DNA of 26,564 nucleotides, taken from positions 1-26,564 of IMG/VR virus record IMGVR_UViG_3300005859_000008. The stretch is one strand, 5' to 3'. Positions 3,482 to 22,956 of the stretch are shown here, one piece after another. The notes under the pieces are model-generated. The model ran no database searches, had not been told where the DNA came from, and was given only the letters and a program-made list of their open reading frames with translations. Position numbers and translations under genes: made by a program. Within the stretch, counting starts at the first letter, position 1. Each line of letters opens with the position of its first letter.

Positions 3482-3745
3482 ATGATAGAAAGGGTAAGAA
3501 CAAAAGATTCAGTTATATATAAATGTGTAGGTTGTAATAAAGTTCTAGGAGAATTAACTGACGTTGGAGAGGTAATTGTAAAGCCAAGTTGTGAACATTA
3601 CAGATGGATAGAAAGTTCAAGCGAATGTTATTATTATATGCTTCCTGGATGTGGAAGAAGTTATATAAGATGGTTAAAGGAGAATTATGTTTTAAAGCTG
3701 GAGTCTCCAGGAACTGTTTTTCTTTTAATTCCAAGACAAAGTTAA
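3482..3745 (+). CDS. Putative Zn-ribbon protein, CxxC...CEHY (87 aa), SIRV ORF90-like
   Basis: CVGC and SCEHY motifs; GAGGAG SD; early promoter; T-tract terminator. Confidence 0.82.
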   Translation: MIERVRTKDSVIYKCVGCNKVLGELTDVGEVIVKPSCEHYRWIESSSECYYYMLPGCGRSYIRWLKENYVLKLESPGTVFLLIPRQS

Positions 3746-4035
3746 TTTTTTTATTTCAAGTTTTCAATTTCTAGTTCTTAATTTTTAATTTATAAATTAG
3801 CTAAGATTATGGACAATTTTTCTCCTTCTCCAAATAAAAATACAAAGATGATAAAAACTAATTTACAATATGAGTAATATTGCATATTGGACGTTTGAAA
3901 ACTGTAAAACTGCAGTTTTTTGGGTCTTTTTGATAATTTTCTTCTAGATACAAGGAGGAGAGAAAGTGGAGATGAAGAGATAAAGAGAGTTTTATATTTG
4001 TCATAAAGAATATGTAATTTTAGGGGGATAAAAAG

Positions 4036-4599
4036 ATGGGAAATTTAAGAGTTCAAGTTCAATATAAAGATGGAAAATACCCTTACTTTTTCGATAAGGA
4101 ACTAAATATAACTGGAATAGGTTCTAGAAATAAAGGTAGAGCTATTTATACGAGTGGAAAATTGGTTAAAGAAGAAAATGGAAAAAGTTATATGGATTTT
4201 GAACAGATTAGTCCAATAACAGTAAAATTACAAAATGCTAAAATAACGGTTACACAGTCAGGAACTTTAGTAATAAAACCAGAAGAAAGTTCAACACTTT
4301 ATGTTGTAGAAATTCCAGGCGGATATAGGGGAAGTCCTACTACTGAAATTCTATATGGAGATTGCCAAAAGACTAGTATATTAATGTCTCCTGCTGGAAG
4401 TTTAGGCGTTATAGAACATCTTTGGTGTAATGGAAATGCAGAATTTTTGTACAGTATTTCTGGTAGAACTAGAACTGCTGGATTTGAAAATTTAATTGAA
4501 TTATTTGGAGAAAATTTGAATGGAAGAATAATGATAAAAGATGGAAATGTTAAAGTAATTTATGATGAGGAATTAGATAAATTACTAAACGATTCTTAG
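4036..4599 (+). CDS. Hypothetical beta-rich protein (187 aa)
   Basis: Long ORF, AGGGGGA SD, TTTTATATTTGTC promoter at ~3989; Gly-rich motifs GGYRGS and SPAGSLG. Confidence 0.85.
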   Translation: MGNLRVQVQYKDGKYPYFFDKELNITGIGSRNKGRAIYTSGKLVKEENGKSYMDFEQISPITVKLQNAKITVTQSGTLVIKPEESSTLYVVEIPGGYRGSPTTEILYGDCQKTSILMSPAGSLGVIEHLWCNGNAEFLYSISGRTRTAGFENLIELFGENLNGRIMIKDGNVKVIYDEELDKLLNDS

Positions 4600-7790: not shown

Positions 7791-8726
7791 CTATATCTCA
7801 AGTTCTAATTCATCTTTTTCTTTCTTTATCTTTTTCTTTTCCTTTAAAATTTCATTTACAATTTTGTAATTTCTAATTAATTCAATTGTAAGGCTGTCAA
7901 GACCTATCTTTCTTAATTTGTTAGCATATCTTGTGTATTTATTGTCAATTTGCCATTTATTGTATACTAGAATATAAGCGTTCATAACTTCTAGAATTTT
8001 TCTGTTAGTCAAATCATATTCAAATGGAAAATGAATCTTGTCTAAAAATTCAAAAAGTTGTTCTTTTTCTTCTTCCGTAATTTTATACCTTTCTCTACTT
8101 GTTTTTTGATTTCCTACATATTTTCTTGTTCCATCAAACCAAAAAATCTCTCTATATGCCATAGTTTTGGAATATGTAGCTGTGTCCATACTATCCGCAA
8201 AATCGAAAGCTTGTAGAAAATATGGTGCAGACATTCCAAGGACATGTAGATAAGGGACTTTCCTTCTTACATAATAAACCCATGGAAATGTATAGATTAA
8301 AACTTTTAATTTGCTAGATGCTACAAGTCCTCCTATTGCAAAATAGTAAGTATATTGTTTGTAAAAATCTATAGCTTCATCTACATCTTGAATTGGATAG
8401 ATATGGATAACTGGAATAATTTTTTCTATCCATTCTATTTTTGTATACAAGTATTCAAAATATTGAAAATTTCGTTTGTCTAGAGGAGAAAACATACTTG
8501 CAATATCAAGAGAAAAAAAAGCATATGCATCTAATTTTTTGTATTTTTCTAGAATGTCTTTCACAGAAATATGTAGACCATATAATGCAATTTGGTAACC
8601 TCCGCTATCTATCCAAGTCTCATTTTTCCATGTCTTTTTTCTAAATCTTAACTGATTAATTAGAATCGGAAAGTCAGTCTTCAGAATATATGATGTTGTT
8701 GAACTTAGACCAAAGACAAGTTTCAT
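7791..8726 (-). CDS. tRNA-guanine transglycosylase (TGT)-fold protein, SIRV2 ORF310-like (311 aa)
   Basis: TGT-superfamily motifs IDSGGYQ, FSLD, IPVIH, IGGLV, HVLG, DSMD. Size and pairing with the permease match SIRV. Confidence 0.88.
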   Translation of the reverse strand: MKLVFGLSSTTSYILKTDFPILINQLRFRKKTWKNETWIDSGGYQIALYGLHISVKDILEKYKKLDAYAFFSLDIASMFSPLDKRNFQYFEYLYTKIEWIEKIIPVIHIYPIQDVDEAIDFYKQYTYYFAIGGLVASSKLKVLIYTFPWVYYVRRKVPYLHVLGMSAPYFLQAFDFADSMDTATYSKTMAYREIFWFDGTRKYVGNQKTSRERYKITEEEKEQLFEFLDKIHFPFEYDLTNRKILEVMNAYILVYNKWQIDNKYTRYANKLRKIGLDSLTIELIRNYKIVNEILKEKKKIKKEKDELELEI

Positions 8727-9919
8727 TATTGTTCTCCATTAATCACCTTCTTTCTTAAGACGTATATAATTCCTCCAATTAAAGGCAATAGTAATATTCT
8801 TAATATTGTATATATTAGATTTCCTTCTATTACGAAATTATAGAATATTGGGTTTTGAAGTCCTAGATAAAAGAATATAAATATCTGTAGTGCTAAACTT
8901 ATTATTACACTTAAAAATAATAATTTATTATTTGTTAATTTTAAAAATGTTAAACTTACAATTAAGAAATTCCAGAAAATGAACAATATACCAGTAAATC
9001 CAAATGAAATTGAAAATCCTAAAAGATTTTCTAAAACGTTAGCGATTGTATCAACAGTAAAGATTAACAATAAAATGTTAGGCGTAAGTTTTGTAAATTT
9101 TTCTGGGAGAATTCTATCAAATGTAAAGTTTTGAATTAAACGACTTTGAATTATAGCATTCACAAAAAGATAGCTTAGATACCAGATTGGAAATAAAGCA
9201 AACAATATATTCAAATTAGAAAAGCTATCTAATATTGATAATATTGTAACTACTAAATAACTTCCAAAATATCCAATTTTTATTGCTTTATTTACGTTCT
9301 TTACTTCTCCAGCTATATAACTAATTGCATTTATGAATAGAAACATAGACAAGTCAAATAGTAAGGCTGAAAGTAAGGTATTCGATATTGTGAAGTTTTG
9401 TATCTGGAAATGAAAATTTGAGACTGGGAGAAATATTGATACAAGTATCTGTAGAATAGCTAATCCGTCTACTATATAAGCATAAATTGATTTTCTAATT
9501 ATACTAATTATAGTTATTATAAATAATAATTCTGAAATTAGAAATTTATCAATTAGTGAAATATTAAAATTCATAAGTACTAAATTTGTTAGGACTGGAG
9601 CTGAGAATATATACGTTAGCCATAACGAGATTCCGAAAATTGTGTAGAATTTCGGGGAAAATGTATTTCTAATGTAAGCATAATCCCCACCGTTTAATGG
9701 AATTTTCTTGGTTAGAATATAATACATTACTAATAATGGAATTTCAAATATTGCTCCTAATATTACAGCAATTAACAAGTTTACATTTTTCATCATTTGA
9801 GAGACAAAAATTGGATAACTTATTCCGCTCAAAATTCCCATGTAAAGAAGATTGATAGAAAAAATATCTAATGAATTGAAATTTTTTATAATTCCTGAAC
9901 TTTGTCTTTTGAATTCCAT
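8726..9919 (-). CDS. APC-family amino acid permease-like membrane protein, SIRV2 ORF399-like (397 aa)
   Basis: Many TM segments; APC motifs PLNGGDYAYIRNTF and SYIAGEVKN; stop overlaps the TGT start (TAATG). Confidence 0.88.
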   Translation of the reverse strand: MEFKRQSSGIIKNFNSLDIFSINLLYMGILSGISYPIFVSQMMKNVNLLIAVILGAIFEIPLLVMYYILTKKIPLNGGDYAYIRNTFSPKFYTIFGISLWLTYIFSAPVLTNLVLMNFNISLIDKFLISELLFIITIISIIRKSIYAYIVDGLAILQILVSIFLPVSNFHFQIQNFTISNTLLSALLFDLSMFLFINAISYIAGEVKNVNKAIKIGYFGSYLVVTILSILDSFSNLNILFALFPIWYLSYLFVNAIIQSRLIQNFTFDRILPEKFTKLTPNILLLIFTVDTIANVLENLLGFSISFGFTGILFIFWNFLIVSLTFLKLTNNKLLFLSVIISLALQIFIFFYLGLQNPIFYNFVIEGNLIYTILRILLLPLIGGIIYVLRKKVINGEQ

Positions 9920-10039: not shown

Positions 10040-10465
10040 TTAAGAAAGAAATTTTAAAATGTCATTTGTATCTTTTAACAATTCTATTTTTTGTCTGGAA
10101 TAATTTTTCAGATGATAAAGTGCATGTGGAAATTTCGCATTTCCCATTCTATTCATAAATATCATTATTAAAGAATTTTGTTCATATAACATTCTAAACC
10201 AGGAAGGAGTAGGGTCAAATGGTAGATATAATAAAACTTCACTTCCATTTTTATTACTTTCTATAGCTTTTATTATAAATGGTTTTTTAATAGAAAATGG
10301 TGGGTTACAATAAGAATGATTTGGCCATAATTTTTCTACTGCATTGAATTTAGTTTTATCTAAACAAACGTCTATAAATTTTAATTCATTTGTAATAATA
10401 TTATAAACTGCTTCAGGTGTTGGTTTATTGTCATGTATAGCCCTTTTCGGATATTTAAGTGTCAT
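10040..10465 (-). CDS. Phage-type DNA N6-adenine methyltransferase (Dam-like, PF05869-type; 141 aa)
   Basis: PTPEAVY, IDVC, catalytic YCNPPFS, KA, then LYLPFDPTPSWF, in the order typical of the small phage Dam family. Own TTTAATTTGTC promoter. Confidence 0.82.
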   Translation of the reverse strand: MTLKYPKRAIHDNKPTPEAVYNIITNELKFIDVCLDKTKFNAVEKLWPNHSYCNPPFSIKKPFIIKAIESNKNGSEVLLYLPFDPTPSWFRMLYEQNSLIMIFMNRMGNAKFPHALYHLKNYSRQKIELLKDTNDILKFLS

Positions 10466-16038: not shown

Positions 16039-17712
16039 TTAGGTTAAAATTGTTATTTCTTGTGGTTGAGAATTTATAGGCATTAAATTATTTGGCGGAT
16101 AAGTCCTTACTCTCAACCAATAAACTATCATTCCATTTGGAGCATAAGATGCCTCATTATTTCCTACCATGATTTCAAAAGGCAGAGATGCTGTATTTGA
16201 CGCCTCAACGATATATCCAGTAGTAATTTGATAGTTTTGAAAAGTATAATATAATGTTGAAGTATAGATATGTGACCAAATTGAAACAGGAAATAAATTG
16301 TTAGAAGGTGTAGAAAGATTTCCGTAAAAAGAATTTCCACCTTGATTTGACCTTACTTCTGCATTATTTCCACCTTCAAAATCTAGAAGTGTATATGTCC
16401 CTCCTTGAGAAGGAAATCCGTAACTAGAAGATAAATAATTGCTAAATCCCACCATATTCCAGCCCCAAGAATCTCCTGATGGACTTGTTGATTGTGTTCC
16501 ATAATATTCAATTATAATTGGTGGAGAATACGAATTTACAGTAGCTATACCGTTTTCTCCTCCAGCTTCTGTAGTTCCGCCCTTTATTGTCACACCGTTA
16601 TTAAATGTTACAGTTCCGTTGCTCTGATATACATTTATTCCATTTGGAGATGAATTACCAACAAAATTCCAATAATCTACAAATACATTTTCACCATTAT
16701 CATATTGTGCATATACAGAAGTTAGTTGTGGTGCCATCCCAGTGTAAGGATATTGTATAGAATTTCTAACAAACATATATATAGTCAATGAACCATTAGC
16801 TGGAATTGAAATTGGTAAATTAATCCAAATATAAACATTTGTTAAATTAGAATTATAGCTTTCTATCCATGAATAAAGTGAAGTATTACAATTAATATCT
16901 AGACAAAATTGTAAATTTAAAAGTTGAGATGGATTGGATAAAATATTAGATAAATCTAGTTGTAATAATTGTTGAAATGGAGTTGGAGTTGGGTCTGATT
17001 GGTTGTTTGTTATAGTAATTGTATAAGCAGTTGTTGGACTTTGAATAAACCCAATCTCTAGACTTAATAAAGTTGGATCAGTAGCATTTAATTCAATTTC
17101 AGATGGAGAACTTGTTGTTATTTTTAAACAATTTTTAGGCATTAAATAAATCGCGTTATTTATCTGAACTGTAGAATTTCCTAAATTCTGAATTTGTATT
17201 TCTCTCCAAGTTTGTAGATAAGACGGGTCAAGATAATTCTTAATAAGTTCTTCAATAGTTGAAGTTCCAGAAAATGTAAATTGTGTTCCAGCAATTTGTG
17301 ACGGAGTTACAATTTTTGAAATTACTTTTGGAATCAAAAGTTGTATTTGTCTATATATTTTTGACAATTGTATTTGAAAATTTGGAATTTGTGTTATAAC
17401 ATTTTGTAATTCTATAGAAGGTTTAATAGACATATCTAGAAATGGTTGTTGTTTCCCCTGACCAAAAGTATAAGCTTGAGGTTGAGATAAATTATGTAAA
17501 ACGTTATATCCATTTACTTTTAAAGCTGAAACGTATAACATTTTTGCAATTATTTCATTTAGATTTTGTAAATTGTAATTTTGATAATATTGAAGAAGTT
17601 TTGCGGAACCATATTGATCCAAAAACAGAAGATTTTTGACAAAGTTATTCCAGTCCTGAAGTGTTAGATATTCTAATGGAAGTTTAAACTTGACTGGATA
17701 TGGTGTAGGCAT
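16039..17712 (-). CDS. Minor structural protein, SIRV2 ORF564-like, with DUF2341-like/beta-sandwich C-terminal region (557 aa)
   Basis: ITITNNQ..PTPFQQLL..YSWIES..IWINLP..IPAN..TIYM..YDNGENVF signature. Start placed at ATG 17712 because it is the exact mirror of ATG 13027 in the inverted repeat (the track gives TTG 17736). Confidence 0.85.
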   Translation of the reverse strand: MPTPYPVKFKLPLEYLTLQDWNNFVKNLLFLDQYGSAKLLQYYQNYNLQNLNEIIAKMLYVSALKVNGYNVLHNLSQPQAYTFGQGKQQPFLDMSIKPSIELQNVITQIPNFQIQLSKIYRQIQLLIPKVISKIVTPSQIAGTQFTFSGTSTIEELIKNYLDPSYLQTWREIQIQNLGNSTVQINNAIYLMPKNCLKITTSSPSEIELNATDPTLLSLEIGFIQSPTTAYTITITNNQSDPTPTPFQQLLQLDLSNILSNPSQLLNLQFCLDINCNTSLYSWIESYNSNLTNVYIWINLPISIPANGSLTIYMFVRNSIQYPYTGMAPQLTSVYAQYDNGENVFVDYWNFVGNSSPNGINVYQSNGTVTFNNGVTIKGGTTEAGGENGIATVNSYSPPIIIEYYGTQSTSPSGDSWGWNMVGFSNYLSSSYGFPSQGGTYTLLDFEGGNNAEVRSNQGGNSFYGNLSTPSNNLFPVSIWSHIYTSTLYYTFQNYQITTGYIVEASNTASLPFEIMVGNNEASYAPNGMIVYWLRVRTYPPNNLMPINSQPQEITILT

Positions 17713-17858
17713 TAAATACATTTTATAAATTGACAAAAATAAAGTGACATAACTTATATATCATATTATGTATATTACTTGTCATTACTATTCTTAACTT
17801 TTTACGTTAAATTAGAAACAACACAATATACCTTATATTATATATATGGCATATTGTT
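17710..17858 (-). repeat. Right arm of the 149-bp inverted repeat (promoter region of the ORF564-like gene)
   Basis: Mirror of 12881-13029 (paired coordinates sum to 30739). Confidence 0.85.
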
Positions 17859-17865
17859 AGTCTTT

Positions 17866-18681
17866 TCAAGTTTTGAAATTTTTCATATATTCTATAACTT
17901 TCATAATATCAAGATGTGTATCTTTTTGGATTTGTAATATGTAATTTTGGTCTTGTAAAATCTGTAATATTTTATCTTTGTTTTGTACAAAGAAATTATA
18001 AAGTTCTGGATGATTTTGATACCAATCATTTTTTCCATTTTTTAAATCATTATCAATTTCTCCAAGAAGAAACGCTAATTGTCTAACATCAATTTCTTTT
18101 CTAACTGATTTAAATATTACTCCTAGTACAGAGAAATAGGGTTTATACTTATAGAGACACATGTTAAAATTTCTTCCTTCTTTACAACTTACTTTCTTCG
18201 GATTATAAATTTTAGCTACTAAACCCTCAAGTCTTTCTTTAGTTATAATTTCAATTAAATCATCTATGTCAAGATAAAATTCTGGAAACCAATTCCAAAT
18301 TGTACTATCTAATCTTAAGGGATGTACATATTTTCCAAGCTCTTTGTCAAAGACATCATATATGATAAATTGTGGAATTTCATTTGTATGGATTTGTAAT
18401 GCTGACGTCTTTTTATGTACAAGTTCCCCATGAATTATATATTGTGAATGTTCTTTTAAATAATTTACAACTTCCTCAATTCCTGGAACTTTCATAAAGA
18501 GTTCTTGAAAAGATTTGTCATGAGGTATATCTTTTCTAGTATTTATTTCTAATATTCCTTGATATTTCAAACAAATATGTGTTCCGTCATATTTTATTTG
18601 ATAATATACATCTTCTTCTAGATTTTTTAAATCTTGATAACTTATATTTTCAGCTTCGTAATGACATAGATTTGTTTGCAT
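17866..18681 (-). CDS. ATP-dependent RNA-ligase-type nucleotidyltransferase (271 aa)
   Basis: Motif I KYDG, Ia TR, III HGELV, IIIa FIIYDV, IV EGLVAK, V YKYK. Short helical-looking C-terminus with no obvious OB fold. Own TAAATAAATTTGTC promoter. Confidence 0.85.
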   Translation of the reverse strand: MQTNLCHYEAENISYQDLKNLEEDVYYQIKYDGTHICLKYQGILEINTRKDIPHDKSFQELFMKVPGIEEVVNYLKEHSQYIIHGELVHKKTSALQIHTNEIPQFIIYDVFDKELGKYVHPLRLDSTIWNWFPEFYLDIDDLIEIITKERLEGLVAKIYNPKKVSCKEGRNFNMCLYKYKPYFSVLGVIFKSVRKEIDVRQLAFLLGEIDNDLKNGKNDWYQNHPELYNFFVQNKDKILQILQDQNYILQIQKDTHLDIMKVIEYMKNFKT

Positions 18682-18712
18682 GGATAAGAATAAAAAATTA
18701 CGACAAATTTAT

Positions 18713-21700
18713 TTAATAATTACTTCTTAACTGCCAATTTAATAGAATTAATTGTATCTCCTCATCTGTAAGTCCATATTTTTTCAGTTGTTGTAGATAT
18801 GATTGAGCTGTATTTAGATCAATTTTATGTTTCTCAAACAACAAATTGATTGTTTCTATAATTTGACTTACATATCTACTAACTCTTCTATTTCTAGCAT
18901 ATTCCATATAAGTATTCTGTAAATCTGATGGAATTTGGAATTCTGAAAATACTTTTTGTAGAAGTTGATTCGGATTTGATATATATTCAGAAATTTCTAA
19001 AGCTTTGGAAGGTGTAATATAAAGTTCTTGGTAACCCATTATTATTTTCTTAATTTGGGCTGATAATTTCAAAACACCAAGAAATGTCTCAGTAAATCCA
19101 TATTGTTTCATTAGATTTTCTAATTGTGTATTCTGGATTCCATAAATTAGAGTATCTATATATTCCGTCTTTAAAGTATGTACATAAACGCCTATAAGTT
19201 CATGTTGATAAACATCTAGATATAGATTTATAAATTCTGAAGGAATAAATGATAATTCTACAAGTTTCTGAATTGGATAATTATACTTAAATGCCTTTTC
19301 TATTTCTTCAATTTTCGGGATATATCTTTTCCAAAGTTCTAGACCAAAACTAGTTACATATTGGTCTAACAAAATCTTTATTTGATTGTCTGGAATTCCT
19401 AATTTTTTCAATTCAGATTCTGCATTTCCTAAGTTTACGGGAATTTTCCCGACTCTGTAAAGTTGTCCTTCTATAATGTTTGAAATTATTGTATGTATAT
19501 TGTAGAATGTTGGAGTATAAGTTTGTACAAACAAATTAGCTACATTTTTTTCCATTCCTAATTTCTCAAGTTCTTTAACGGCATTATCTGGCTTAATTTC
19601 TAGATTTCTTAGTAATGATTTTATATACTCAAGTCCTATTTCAAGTTGGTAAATTTGAGTTTCTGGAATAATCTCATAATCTACAACTTCCTTCGGTAAT
19701 TTCTTGATATCTGTAACTATACCATGTCTTGCTAAAGTTCTATAATAATCCACAATTTTTGGAAAAACATATTCAAAGTAGAACTTTTTACTATACAAAT
19801 CAACAGCTGTATTATCCTTAAGAATCTTTGATAATTCTGTAGCTAATTGTTTCTCATCATAATACAAATTCTTAGCTAAAGTTTCTATATAAGATAAATG
19901 TAATTTAGTAATTGGAATATTATAATCATTTTGTATTATCTCATTTACAAGATAATCGTTAATTTTCAATTTTCTTAATTCAGAATCAACAACTTTTGAG
20001 TCAACTAAGAAGTTTCTCAATTGTTCTTTTATAACTGATAATGTTGTAGATATTGTAATTTCTTGATTTACATAATTGGAAAATATATCTTCAAATTCCT
20101 TAATTACGCCAATTGAATGTAATTGTTTTTTAATCTCATCAAATGACAGATATCCTTTCTTTCCAAGATTTTCTATCTGTGAAATCTGGTATTTTATTAA
20201 ACGTGATGTTTGATATTCAAAAATTACTTCAGAAATTATAGATGAATCAAATCCAATAGTTTTTAAATCTTTTTCAGCATTTCCAGGAGTAATAACAAAG
20301 TTTTCTAGTTTAAATTGAAATTCCTTTAGGAGATATTGTAATCTAATATATTCTAATTCAAAGTCAAGAACTTCTAGAGCTACCTTTTCGTTAAATTTAT
20401 TAGCTTTTAACGTTTCTTTTATTTTCTTTTCGTCAAAAATTCCTAATCTAGTAATTTGTTGTAATTGTCTAAGTAAAAGTTCATTAGCATATACAAGTTG
20501 TGATTGTTCTATCATTACGTCAAAAACGTCTTGGACTTCTTTAGGATAATTTAACTCCTTAAATAATTTCTTGATTGTGGATTCTAAATATTTTAAGTCT
20601 ACATATGGTCTTCCGAAATTTGATAAGGCACGTGATAATAGACTTCGTAAAAATTGTCTCACAATTCTTTGTACAGCATATTTATACTCAAGAGAGAAAA
20701 CTTTTAGAAATAAATCTCTACCAGCTAAATTAACATTCTGTATAATCTCGTTATAAGCGTCTTCTGGAGAAACTACAAATTGTCTTATTCCTTGTTCTAC
20801 AGCTCTTTGTAGAAGTTTAGCTGTCTGATTTTGATACATTAATTTAGCAGTTTTTGGAGTTATTAAGTTATTAAATGCATATTGAGAAACTGAAGAAATA
20901 TCTAAAATTCCATATTGAGAAGCTTGAATAACATCGCGGATATTTACAGATTTAAATAATGGATTTCTGGGTACAAAATCATCTATTGGAGATTCAAGAT
21001 AAGCGTTAGTAAACCATGCTGGATAACCTGTCAGAAGTATTGTTTCCCTAAGGTGGTCTTTAATCTCATCAAATGATCTTACAGCTACCCAATTCGCAAT
21101 TAATTGGAAAGGCGGGTCTGCAAACGGTAAATCCCCAAGTCCAATTTCGTTAAAAATTTCTCTAGCCGAAATCTTGAAATCCGAAACAAAAGGTTCCTTA
21201 ATAAATTCTCTAAGTGTTTTTTCAGCCTCTTCTCTAACTTCTTTTAAAAAATCAACAGCAGAATCAGCAAATGCCTCTACAATTTCTCCAAATTTTATCG
21301 GGACTTTCCCGCCCAATCCAACTGGAGATAAGTCAATTTCAATTTCTGGAAGAATTTTTGACAATTTTTCCGTAATTTTTGGTAAAAACTTTCCAATTAC
21401 AATTGGTGTAGCAAAAGGTGTAATAAATTGTGCAATTTGAGAAATTCCAGCTCCAATATGACTCATATTCTGTCCAAATCCAGTTAGAAAATCTACAGCA
21501 ATTCCAGCTAATATTCCTGAAAATGCATTAGCTATACCAGTGAAAAATCCGTAAGCGTCATTAACGAACTGAGACGCTATATTTGCCAGGTCTTGGAATA
21601 TGCCTACAATTTGTTGTTCTAGCCATGTTAGAAATCCAGTTATTGCGGGAATTGCGGTTTGTACAAAATTTTGTAGAACTTGTAAGAAATTGTTAGCAAT

Positions 21701-21889
21701 TTTTTGCATAAATGTTGGAATATCTGAAATTGCTTGACCTAAGAAACTTGCAATATTTTCAATATCTTTAACAATTGTATTAAAAAAGTTTATAAAGTCA
21801 GAAGCTAAAAAATTTGTAAAATTTTCGAGAGCTGACAATTCATCTGAAAAAAATGTTCCTAAATCTCCTAAATCCAATATGAAACTCAT
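18713..21889 (-). CDS. Large terminal (tail) fibre structural protein, SIRV ORF1070-like (1058 aa)
   Basis: Size, amphipathic helical N-terminus, repeated helical xLKxLG units, synteny with the resolvase and ORF564. Confidence 0.92.
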   Translation of the reverse strand: MSFILDLGDLGTFFSDELSALENFTNFLASDFINFFNTIVKDIENIASFLGQAISDIPTFMQKIANNFLQVLQNFVQTAIPAITGFLTWLEQQIVGIFQDLANIASQFVNDAYGFFTGIANAFSGILAGIAVDFLTGFGQNMSHIGAGISQIAQFITPFATPIVIGKFLPKITEKLSKILPEIEIDLSPVGLGGKVPIKFGEIVEAFADSAVDFLKEVREEAEKTLREFIKEPFVSDFKISAREIFNEIGLGDLPFADPPFQLIANWVAVRSFDEIKDHLRETILLTGYPAWFTNAYLESPIDDFVPRNPLFKSVNIRDVIQASQYGILDISSVSQYAFNNLITPKTAKLMYQNQTAKLLQRAVEQGIRQFVVSPEDAYNEIIQNVNLAGRDLFLKVFSLEYKYAVQRIVRQFLRSLLSRALSNFGRPYVDLKYLESTIKKLFKELNYPKEVQDVFDVMIEQSQLVYANELLLRQLQQITRLGIFDEKKIKETLKANKFNEKVALEVLDFELEYIRLQYLLKEFQFKLENFVITPGNAEKDLKTIGFDSSIISEVIFEYQTSRLIKYQISQIENLGKKGYLSFDEIKKQLHSIGVIKEFEDIFSNYVNQEITISTTLSVIKEQLRNFLVDSKVVDSELRKLKINDYLVNEIIQNDYNIPITKLHLSYIETLAKNLYYDEKQLATELSKILKDNTAVDLYSKKFYFEYVFPKIVDYYRTLARHGIVTDIKKLPKEVVDYEIIPETQIYQLEIGLEYIKSLLRNLEIKPDNAVKELEKLGMEKNVANLFVQTYTPTFYNIHTIISNIIEGQLYRVGKIPVNLGNAESELKKLGIPDNQIKILLDQYVTSFGLELWKRYIPKIEEIEKAFKYNYPIQKLVELSFIPSEFINLYLDVYQHELIGVYVHTLKTEYIDTLIYGIQNTQLENLMKQYGFTETFLGVLKLSAQIKKIIMGYQELYITPSKALEISEYISNPNQLLQKVFSEFQIPSDLQNTYMEYARNRRVSRYVSQIIETINLLFEKHKIDLNTAQSYLQQLKKYGLTDEEIQLILLNWQLRSNY

Positions 21890-22411: not shown

Positions 22412-22621
22412 TTAGGATTTTTCTTCTTCCTCTACTTTCACTTGCATTTTTCTCATTTCTTTAACAATTTTTACAACTTCTAAAGCTTTTTGGAAAACTT
22501 CAGATTTTCTAACATTTTCATCATCACATGTCGCTAAAGCCATAGTCAAATCGTCAAGAGCTAGATATAGTTTAGCTATTGTCTCTGTATTCGAATTTGA
22601 CTTTCTTTTGTTTTCTGACAT
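22412..22621 (-). CDS. Conserved rudiviral helical protein, SIRV ORF69/70-like (69 aa)
   Basis: Overlaps the 3' end of the resolvase gene, as in SIRV; size match. Confidence 0.75.
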   Translation of the reverse strand: MSENKRKSNSNTETIAKLYLALDDLTMALATCDDENVRKSEVFQKALEVVKIVKEMRKMQVKVEEEEKS

Positions 22622-22937
22622 CTTGAGTCAGATTATAAATTATGACACTTTTATGTTTTTTATAATGTACAATTACTAACGGTCTACATGAACAAAAACT
22701 AAACATCTCACAAAATTCAAACAGTTTTTCTATTTGAAAAATATCTACAATAACGAAATCTTTAGATGTGGATTTTACTTCGATTGGAAAAATTGTATTA
22801 TCTTTCGTAGCTATGATATCTGGAATAGCCTGTTTTCCAGTTCCAGATACTGGTATTCTGATAGCGTTATAACCATTTTTATCTAAAAACTCTAATGTTT
22901 TATATTCATAATATTTTCCAGATTGTCTAATATTCAT
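22572..22937 (-). CDS. hjc: Archaeal-type Holliday junction resolvase (Hjc/Hjr, SIRV ORF121-like; 121 aa)
   Basis: GKYYE, RIPVSG, PDIIA, IEVKST (PD-(D/E)xK) motifs; ATG 22937. Confidence 0.95.
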   Translation of the reverse strand: MNIRQSGKYYEYKTLEFLDKNGYNAIRIPVSGTGKQAIPDIIATKDNTIFPIEVKSTSKDFVIVDIFQIEKLFEFCEMFSFCSCRPLVIVHYKKHKSVIIYNLTQDVRKQKKVKFEYRDNS

Positions 22938-22956
22938 CAAAACAAATTTAGAAATT

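Follow-up and report, generated by a model that had tools for sequence, protein, structure and literature searches.

What defines an RNA-ligase class is the set of domains around its catalytic core. The Rnl3 enzymes of thermophilic archaea (Pab1020, 2vug; Palaeococcus pacificus, 8uce; Methanothermobacter MthRnl, 5d1o) have an N-terminal domain before motif I, together with dimerisation and Rnl1-like C-terminal domains; T4 Rnl1 (2c5u) has a tRNA-binding C-terminal domain and a Pnkp partner; T4 Rnl2 (2hvq) has a small all-helical C-terminal domain; and the Rnl5 enzymes (Naegleria/Deinococcus) have an N-terminal OB-like domain. T4 Rnl1 is also known as gp63, the catalyst of tail-fibre attachment. 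As to the ATP-dependent DNA ligases, all known ones possess an OB domain and motif VI. Here, we analyse a 271-amino-acid protein, hereafter the rudiviral ligase, which is predicted to share the chemistry of these enzymes while lacking the accessory domains that define Rnl1, Rnl2, Rnl3, Rnl5 and the DNA ligases. It is encoded by a stretch of virus DNA of 26,564 nucleotides (positions 1 to 26,564 of the IMG/VR record IMGVR_UViG_3300005859_000008; hereafter the window), which is about 77% identical to the DNA of SIRV5, SIRV6 and SIRV7, of the genus Usarudivirus from Yellowstone. The window belongs to a rudivirus, a rod-shaped virus of hot-spring archaea, of the Yellowstone usarudivirus type.

The rudiviral ligase is already flagged in databases, yet it is uncharacterised. 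A preliminary description of the window, made from the sequence alone, guessed that a sequenced relative might carry an annotation, and this guess was right: in the supplementary table of Bautista et al. 2017, the label of variable cluster v6 is "ATP dependent DNA ligase domain", no ligase being mentioned in the main text, and "RNA ligase domain-containing protein" is the UniRef/BFVD name for the proteins of SIRV5 and SIRV11. The GenBank/RefSeq label is hypothetical protein. Full-text literature searches found no paper discussing the rudiviral ligase, and no published study of a crenarchaeal virus RNA or DNA ligase came to light in literature searches; according to a 2023 review, phage Rnl1 enzymes are the only thermophilic viral ligases on which work has been published.

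Results

The ligase gene is intact, conserved and under purifying selection

The gene lies exactly where the preliminary description had placed it, as an intact open reading frame (ORF) of 271 codons (Table 1), and the plus-strand ORFs overlapping it are small (41-56 amino acids). Its product matches the Pfam model RNA_ligase (PF09414) at 27.6 bits (cut-off 27), the model DNA_ligase_A_M at 24.7 bits, under its cut-off of 26.2, and phrog_12949, a family labelled "unknown function" in PHROG, at 2e-141. A large protein collection contains 37 full-length relatives, which are 61-100% identical and 248-279 amino acids long, and all 18 copies extracted from their loci are intact (270-272 amino acids). 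The dN/dS values against the window copy range from 0.19 to 0.37 in 17 pairwise comparisons, the two domains of the protein behaving alike. Knowing that the copies are intact, that dN/dS is low and that the motifs described below are conserved, we conclude that the ligase gene is real and under purifying selection.

The complete set of nucleotidyltransferase motifs that had been noticed at the outset was confirmed in an alignment of 20 sequences sharing 61-100% identity. Motif I reads I-K30-Y-D32-G33, with K30 and G33 invariant and D32 kept in at least 90% of the sequences, the motif I Asp being replaced by Asn in one metagenomic variant (P0037); it is followed by motif Ia (T48-R49), motif III (H84-G85-E86-L87), motif IIIa (Y108-D109), motif IV (E152-G153-x-x-x-K157) and motif V (K178-Y-K180). 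Hence, motifs I (KxDG), III, IIIa, IV and V occur in the order that characterises the covalent nucleotidyltransferase superfamily. When three distant relatives are added to form the extended alignment, K30, G33, R49, E86, D109, E152, G153, K157, K178 and K180 stay invariant. This conservation indicates that what selection keeps in the rudiviral ligase is the catalytic apparatus.

The family also shows four invariant cysteines (Cys6, Cys37, Cys166 and Cys175) and several invariant histidines, and the loop Cys166-x8-Cys175, which lies between motifs IV and V, is missing in the distant relatives. These cysteines could be a metal site or form stabilising disulfides.

By sequence, the family is very isolated. 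Apart from the family itself, an exhaustive phmmer search of 1.84 billion representatives returned two weak but true outgroup relatives, P0041 and P0042, of about 277 amino acids each (E about 4e-4), one fragment, and two low-complexity artefacts (P0039 and P0040), which we rejected as relatives. No cellular relative was found in 185,579 species genomes in a scan whose sensitivity was that of two peptide patterns.

The catalytic core is nearest to archaeal Rnl3

The preliminary description had called the enzyme RNA-ligase-type and proposed its comparison with the Rnl classes and the DNA ligases; this comparison places the core nearer to RNA ligases, both by sequence and by fold. In Foldseek searches of the PDB, the top matches were the Rnl3 structures 8uce (Palaeococcus), 2vug (Pab1020) and 5d1o (MthRnl), along with T4 Rnl1 (2c5u, E = 1.6e-7), all with E values of about 1e-7 and TM-scores of about 0.49. 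The next ranks were occupied by nucleotidyltransferase domains of DNA ligases (from 6e-6), T4 Rnl2 (2.6e-5) and Naegleria Rnl5 (3e-5). The matches among the viral predicted structures of BFVD are mostly annotated as RNA ligases. At the sequence level, an extended profile, comprising the rudiviral sequences and the three distant relatives on which its outgroup part rests, matched the PDB sequences of Pab1020 (3e-7), Palaeococcus Rnl3 (3.5e-7) and Naegleria Rnl5 (2e-4), with DNA ligases at E values of at least 0.3, and it aligned Lys30 with the motif I lysine of Pab1020. Neither phmmer with the ligase protein nor hmmsearch with the rudiviral-only profile found anything significant among the PDB sequences, so that the Rnl3 assignment rests on the fold and on the extended profile. 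The DNA-ligase matches to NCBIfam models are sub-threshold and confined to the motif I region, and were set aside. Together, these data suggest that the core belongs to the RNA-ligase branch, with archaeal Rnl3 as its probable nearest neighbour.

Rnl3 and the rudiviral ligase have motifs I, Ia, III, IIIa, IV and V in alignment and come from thermophilic archaeal settings. They differ in that the N-terminal domain of Rnl3 is missing from the rudiviral ligase, which begins some 65 residues nearer to motif I (its residue 26 aligns to residue 94 of the Pab1020 chain in the profile alignment) and is about 110 amino acids shorter; in addition, the rudiviral C-terminal domain matches no Rnl3 chain, in keeping with the lack of the dimerisation and Rnl1-like domains. 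Similarly to T4 Rnl2, it is a virus-encoded, stand-alone protein with an N-terminal nucleotidyltransferase domain and a small all-helical C-terminal domain, but T4 Rnl2 is a weaker fold match, gives no sequence-profile match and has a C-terminal domain that does not match the rudiviral one. T4 Rnl1 is a high-ranking fold match and its role in tail-fibre attachment echoes the place of the rudiviral gene among genes for terminal structures; however, the tRNA-binding domain of T4 Rnl1 is unrecognisable in the rudiviral protein, which is 100 amino acids shorter, and the window has no Pnkp-like ORF at the level of Pfam. As for Rnl5, the nucleotidyltransferase core is detectable from the rudiviral side, but the mere 29 residues before the rudiviral motif I leave no OB-like domain there. 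The ATP-dependent DNA ligases (Chlorella virus, African swine fever virus, poxvirus) share the nucleotidyltransferase motifs, and the corresponding domains of the African swine fever virus and T4 DNA ligases are detectable by fold, but the OB domain and motif VI are missing in the rudiviral ligase. In view of the way in which RNA-ligase classes are defined, we count the rudiviral ligase as a variant.

The nearest relatives outside the family are P0041, P0042 and a protein of Caudoviricetes sp. vir521 (BK063668), which are similar in length and are aligned by hhalign with a probability of 97%. Homology covers residues 19-162 of the rudiviral ligase, ending at about residue 162, and the C-terminal parts are unrelated; these relatives further differ by an insertion of about 15 amino acids between motifs IIIa and IV and by the lack of the Cys166-Cys175 loop. 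P0041 and P0042 sit in virus-like contigs, and the best match of P0042 in a phage collection is the tailed virus BK063668, assigned to a Methanofastidiosa host. The outgroup ligase genes (positions 8001-8840 of a 46.7-kb ENA scaffold and 7995-8825 of BK063668) lie within long same-strand runs of small ORFs, typical of the early regions of tailed viruses.

The C-terminal domain is helical and specific to the lineage

The full-length AlphaFold model (pLDDT 79, pTM 0.71) comprises the nucleotidyltransferase domain followed by a C-terminal domain, which when modelled alone reached a pLDDT of 94.3 and a pTM of 0.86. Residues 183-271 are all-helical in both models and, being helical, this domain is not an OB fold, in agreement with the initial remark that no OB domain was evident. 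The domain contains an invariant G-E-I-D-N-D-L motif and has dN/dS values of 0.15-0.47. Searched alone against the PDB with Foldseek, in a library that includes the Rnl3 and Rnl1 chains, it gave no match at E <=1 (best E = 7). The charge and isoelectric point of the protein and of this domain are roughly neutral, and thus uninformative.

The gene has its own rudivirus-type promoter

One described signature of SIRV1 and SIRV2 promoters is a TATA box with a GTC element downstream (PMC5569661, citing Kessler 2004). Such an arrangement precedes the ligase ATG on the minus strand, where AAATTTGTCGTAA occurs at 18698-18710 and an A/T-rich box just upstream of it overlaps the TAA stop codon (18713-18715) of the neighbouring 1058-amino-acid ORF; reading towards the gene, one finds TTATTAAATAAATTTGTCGTAA, then 17 nucleotides, then the ATG. 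The window has 10 sites with the pattern WWWWWWGTCRTAA, whereas 1.1 would be expected and none of 100 shuffled sequences reached 10, and all 10 sites match the sequence just upstream of listed ORF starts (Table 1). Moreover, the TAAA-GTC core upstream of the ligase is kept in four relatives (SIRV8, V60 and two metagenomic ones), two of which carry a 12-nucleotide insertion just upstream of it. This enriched and conserved combination of TATA-like box and GTC element vindicates the earlier view that the gene has its own promoter, overlapping the stop codon of the ORF1070-like gene. As the GTC lies at positions -23 to -21 from the ATG, a distance suited to leaderless transcription, the ligase mRNA would be leaderless.

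Looser versions of WWWWWWGTCRTAA precede several further ORFs of the window, and the sites at 22955 (minus strand) and 22974 (plus strand) make up a divergent promoter pair. We also noticed that the listed TTG start (17736) of the ORF564 homologue located downstream of the ligase falls inside a promoter-like element, TTTTTGTCAA (window 17700-17745, minus strand); the true start is more likely a downstream ATG, at 17721 or 17712.

The gene and its promoter form a cassette that is polymorphic in Yellowstone

The ligase gene separates two genes whose SIRV2 homologues, ORF1070 and ORF564, are adjacent with a gap of 121 nucleotides, as had been stated at the outset; the ORF1070 homologue is listed as a structural protein in Table S4 of Bautista et al. 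2017. The order Hjc resolvase ... ORF1058 - ligase - DUF2341 ORF - ORF of 552-622 amino acids is kept in every ligase contig examined. Using tblastn, we found an ORF1070 homologue in 42 rudivirus records (SIRV1-11, SBRV1, SRV, SSRV1, ARV1-3, MRV1 and SMRV1), which span all the rudivirus genera of the collection. The ligase is found in only 17 records (SIRV4-11 and the isolate V60), and SIRV1-3, SBRV1, SRV, SSRV1, ARV1-3, MRV1 and SMRV1 lack it although all of them have the ORF1070 homologue. In SIRV5, SIRV6 and SIRV7 (KY744233, KY744235 and KY744232), the 1058-amino-acid protein of the window matches two separate places each, the best covering 75% (tblastn), which suggests that the C-terminal part of their ORF1070 homologue is rearranged, interrupted or highly divergent.

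In the Yellowstone isolates V3 and V65, ORF1058 is directly followed by a 566-amino-acid ORF, leaving a clean empty site. We compared the filled and empty junctions by eye. V3, V65 and V60 end ORF1058 identically, and the flanks are identical around the empty and filled sites; in V60, SIRV8 and the window, the cassette begins right at the TAA of ORF1058 and the ancestral intergenic region resumes after it. No flanking direct or inverted repeats were found at the cassette, nor anything suggesting a transposon-like insertion. The ligase cassette is thus polymorphic within one regional population, a fact that goes unmentioned in the paper presenting V3, V60 and V65 as three plaque-forming lytic isolates (PMC9319562). 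Since V3 and V65 form plaques without it, the cassette is dispensable for lytic growth on the laboratory host. What had been perceived as a stand-alone enzyme inserted in the tail-fibre block is indeed a separable cassette equipped with its own promoter, and the ligase is an optional add-on of Yellowstone-type usarudiviruses, outside the core replication and assembly machinery.

Table 1. Coordinates of the ligase gene, its parts and its surroundings (window numbering unless a genome is named).
Feature	Position	Strand	Details and basis
271-amino-acid ligase ORF	17866..18681	minus	ATG start; TGA stop at 17866-17868; ORF list, Pfam RNA_ligase
Nucleotidyltransferase (adenylyltransferase) domain, residues 1-182	18136..18681	minus	alignment, Foldseek, profile, hhalign
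Lys30 codon, predicted AMP-accepting lysine of motif I K-Y-D-G	18592..18594	minus	alignments
All-helical C-terminal domain, residues 183-271, 89 amino acids	17869..18135	minus	model; lineage-specific
Cys6, Cys37, Cys166 and Cys175 codons	18592-18666, 18571-18573, 18184-18186, 18157-18159		within ligase ORF
Rudivirus-type promoter: TATA-like A/T-rich box, then GTC element	18698..18718	minus	sequence, enrichment, conservation
Starts of the WWWWWWGTCRTAA sites	2530, 3994, 6335, 7162, 9935, 10487, 18698, 22955, 22974, 24049		
Cassette (promoter + ORF), about 850 bp	~17862..18712	minus	junctions vs empty site of SIRV2, V3, V65
Empty ligase sites	V3 (OM401712) 3640-3760; V65 (OM401714) 3944-4064		vs window 17862-18712
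Retained ancestral ORF1070-ORF564 intergenic region with promoter of ORF564 homologue	17737..17861	minus	aligns with SIRV2 and V3/V65 empty site
Upstream neighbour, 1058-amino-acid SIRV2 ORF1070 homologue, structural protein	18713..21889	minus	tblastn, 69% identity
Downstream neighbour, ORF564 homologue, DUF2341, structural protein	16039..17736	minus	Pfam, SIRV2 synteny
Holliday-junction resolvase	22572-22940	same-strand block as ligase	Pfam Hjc, 3.6e-17

End-healing enzymes and other genes of the window

No kinase, phosphatase, Hen1, RtcB or 2H enzyme was detected in 30 ORFs of the window (a partial genome) at the sensitivity of Pfam, which agrees with the earlier remark that no Pnkp/Hen1 partner is present there, and no end-healing enzyme is annotated in SIRV8.

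Elsewhere in the window, a 311-amino-acid ORF (7791-8726, minus strand) shares 79% identity with ORF52 of SIRV8, a protein annotated as queuine tRNA-ribosyltransferase and belonging to the core cluster c27, "tRNA-guanine transglycosylase"; the window ORF itself has no Pfam match at E <=0.01. Judging from this similarity, it gives the virus another nucleic-acid-modifying function besides the ligase. It is adjoined by a permease-like ORF (8726-9919, minus strand). Pfam PF05869, the family of Dam-type DNA N6-adenine methyltransferases, is matched at 1.9e-8 by a 141-amino-acid ORF (10040-10465, minus strand).

Discussion

From the conserved motifs, the fold and the promoter, we propose the following mechanism. 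The gene would be transcribed from its own promoter, of the rudivirus type, into a leaderless mRNA, and the ligase would take AMP from ATP on Lys30 and pass it to a 5'-phosphate end, which would then be joined to a 3'-OH, while the lineage-specific helical domain of 89 amino acids presumably selects the substrate or a partner. The likeliest substrate would be RNA with 3'-OH/5'-phosphate ends, and the enzyme may seal nicks in, or join the ends of or circularise, viral or host RNA during infection. In our judgement, it is somewhat probable, at a little better than even, that the protein is an active, accessory ligase of the RNA lineage, with an Rnl3-like core and a helical domain of its own, and RNA as its likeliest substrate. 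As to the activity itself, the joining of RNA 3'-OH and 5'-phosphate ends, which its affinities in sequence and fold and the absence of an OB domain lead us to favour, has about an even chance.

Several points weigh against this proposal. The Rnl3 sequence match requires a profile to which three distant relatives were added; the Foldseek TM-scores are modest, and DNA ligases are detected too; the RNA_ligase score barely exceeds its cut-off and that of the DNA-ligase model is nearly equal (27.6/27 vs 24.7); neither the protein nor its C-terminal domain is basic, both being roughly neutral; and the gene lies among structural genes and a Holliday-junction resolvase instead of genes of RNA metabolism. 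Furthermore, thermophilic Rnl3 enzymes also act on single-stranded DNA, so that closeness to Rnl3 is no proof of an RNA substrate.

An alternative is that the enzyme seals DNA nicks in genome maturation or repair, either those arising when replicative intermediates are resolved into hairpin-ended unit genomes or those inflicted by heat and acid on incoming DNA. It would suit the hairpin termini of the genome, the same-strand block that the ligase shares with the Holliday-junction resolvase and structural genes, the DNA_ligase_A_M score (24.7 bits) and the weak NCBIfam matches, which are DNA ligases, and the CD-Search label, which is ATP-dependent DNA ligase domain. Dispensability would be expected of an accessory ligase backed by a host enzyme, and the poxviruses offer a precedent in outline, their genomes being linear and hairpin-ended and their DNA ligase non-essential. 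We nevertheless consider DNA nick sealing, though a serious rival, unlikely, given the missing OB domain and motif VI, the gap between DNA ligases (E of at least 0.3) and Rnl3 (3e-7) in the profile search, the other rudivirus genera that manage without the gene, and the rudiviral Rep protein, which nicks and rejoins DNA unaided. A role within the RNA-ligase branch that had been put forward in the preliminary description is a healing-independent counter-defence, in which the enzyme would re-seal tRNA or rRNA cut by host ribotoxins of the PIN/VapC type leaving 5'-phosphate/3'-OH ends. This role accords with the RNA-ligase-like core, with the failure to find a healing enzyme in either the Pfam-scanned window or the annotated genes of SIRV8, and with the accessory, population-variable gene under purifying selection, as expected of arms-race genes. 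It is a matter of chemistry, however, that an ATP-dependent ligase cannot seal 5'-OH or 2',3'-cyclic-phosphate ends unless a healing enzyme acts, and the HEPN (Csx1) and Cmr cuts of the Sulfolobus type III CRISPR systems leave 5'-OH/cyclic-phosphate ends. The premise that VapC leaves ligatable ends is itself contested, as VapC cleavage products were reported to carry 5'-OH (PMC6459853) and VapC expression was linked to signalling by 2',3'-cyclic-phosphate tRNA fragments (PMC7790460), ends that would call for a kinase or phosphatase before ligation. These reports, together with the lack of any healing enzyme found, weaken the counter-defence idea, and neither a T4 Rnl1-like tRNA-binding domain (Foldseek search with the C-terminal domain) nor tRNA genes in the window were found. 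Hence, even though variable genes have been argued to drive coevolution (Bautista et al. 2017) and usarudiviruses carry anti-toxin-antitoxin genes (PMC11065993), we regard counter-defence as distinctly unlikely.

By analogy with gp63, the protein might be an assembly factor, taking part in tail-fibre attachment or being packaged as a virion protein. In all copies seen, the gene is flanked by the ORF1070 and ORF564 homologues, T4 Rnl1 is among the best fold matches, phrog_562 (RNA ligase and tail fibre attachment catalyst) weakly matches the distant relatives, and the unique, non-basic C-terminal domain with its invariant acidic motif could be a protein-binding module. Yet the evidence for assembly itself is gene position, the fully conserved catalytic residues imply that chemistry is what selection maintains, and the ligase is not needed for the assembly of infectious virions in V3, V65 or any other genus, which makes such a role very improbable. 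That the protein is no ligase in vivo, either adenylylating nucleic-acid ends or proteins and going no further or being an inert remnant, would fit the lack of any equivalent of the domains that other ligases need for the later steps, and the Asn found in place of the motif I Asp in P0037; we find it hardly credible, knowing that motifs IV and V, which serve strand joining, are invariant and that both domains are under purifying selection.

Returning to the RNA-lineage ligase that we favour, a bolder view would make it the founding member of a new RNA-ligase class, in which an Rnl3-like core is combined with an unseen type of helical specificity domain to form an optional counter-defence or RNA-remodelling tool of hyperthermophilic archaeal viruses. 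Its candidate activities would be the healing-free re-sealing of host-inflicted RNA breaks, the circularisation of viral or host RNA, or a gp63-like part in tail-fibre assembly. We regard this view as improbable.

Coming from a virus of hosts living at about 80 °C, a ligase of 271 amino acids would rank among the smallest known and is an obvious candidate for a thermostable reagent, and its unmatched C-terminal domain could reveal a new mode of substrate choice. Owing to the existence of cultured isolates with the cassette (V60 and SIRV4-11) and without it (V3 and V65), the contribution of the ligase to infection is directly testable. Considering the outgroup relatives, small Rnl3-like ligases may occur more widely among archaeal viruses.

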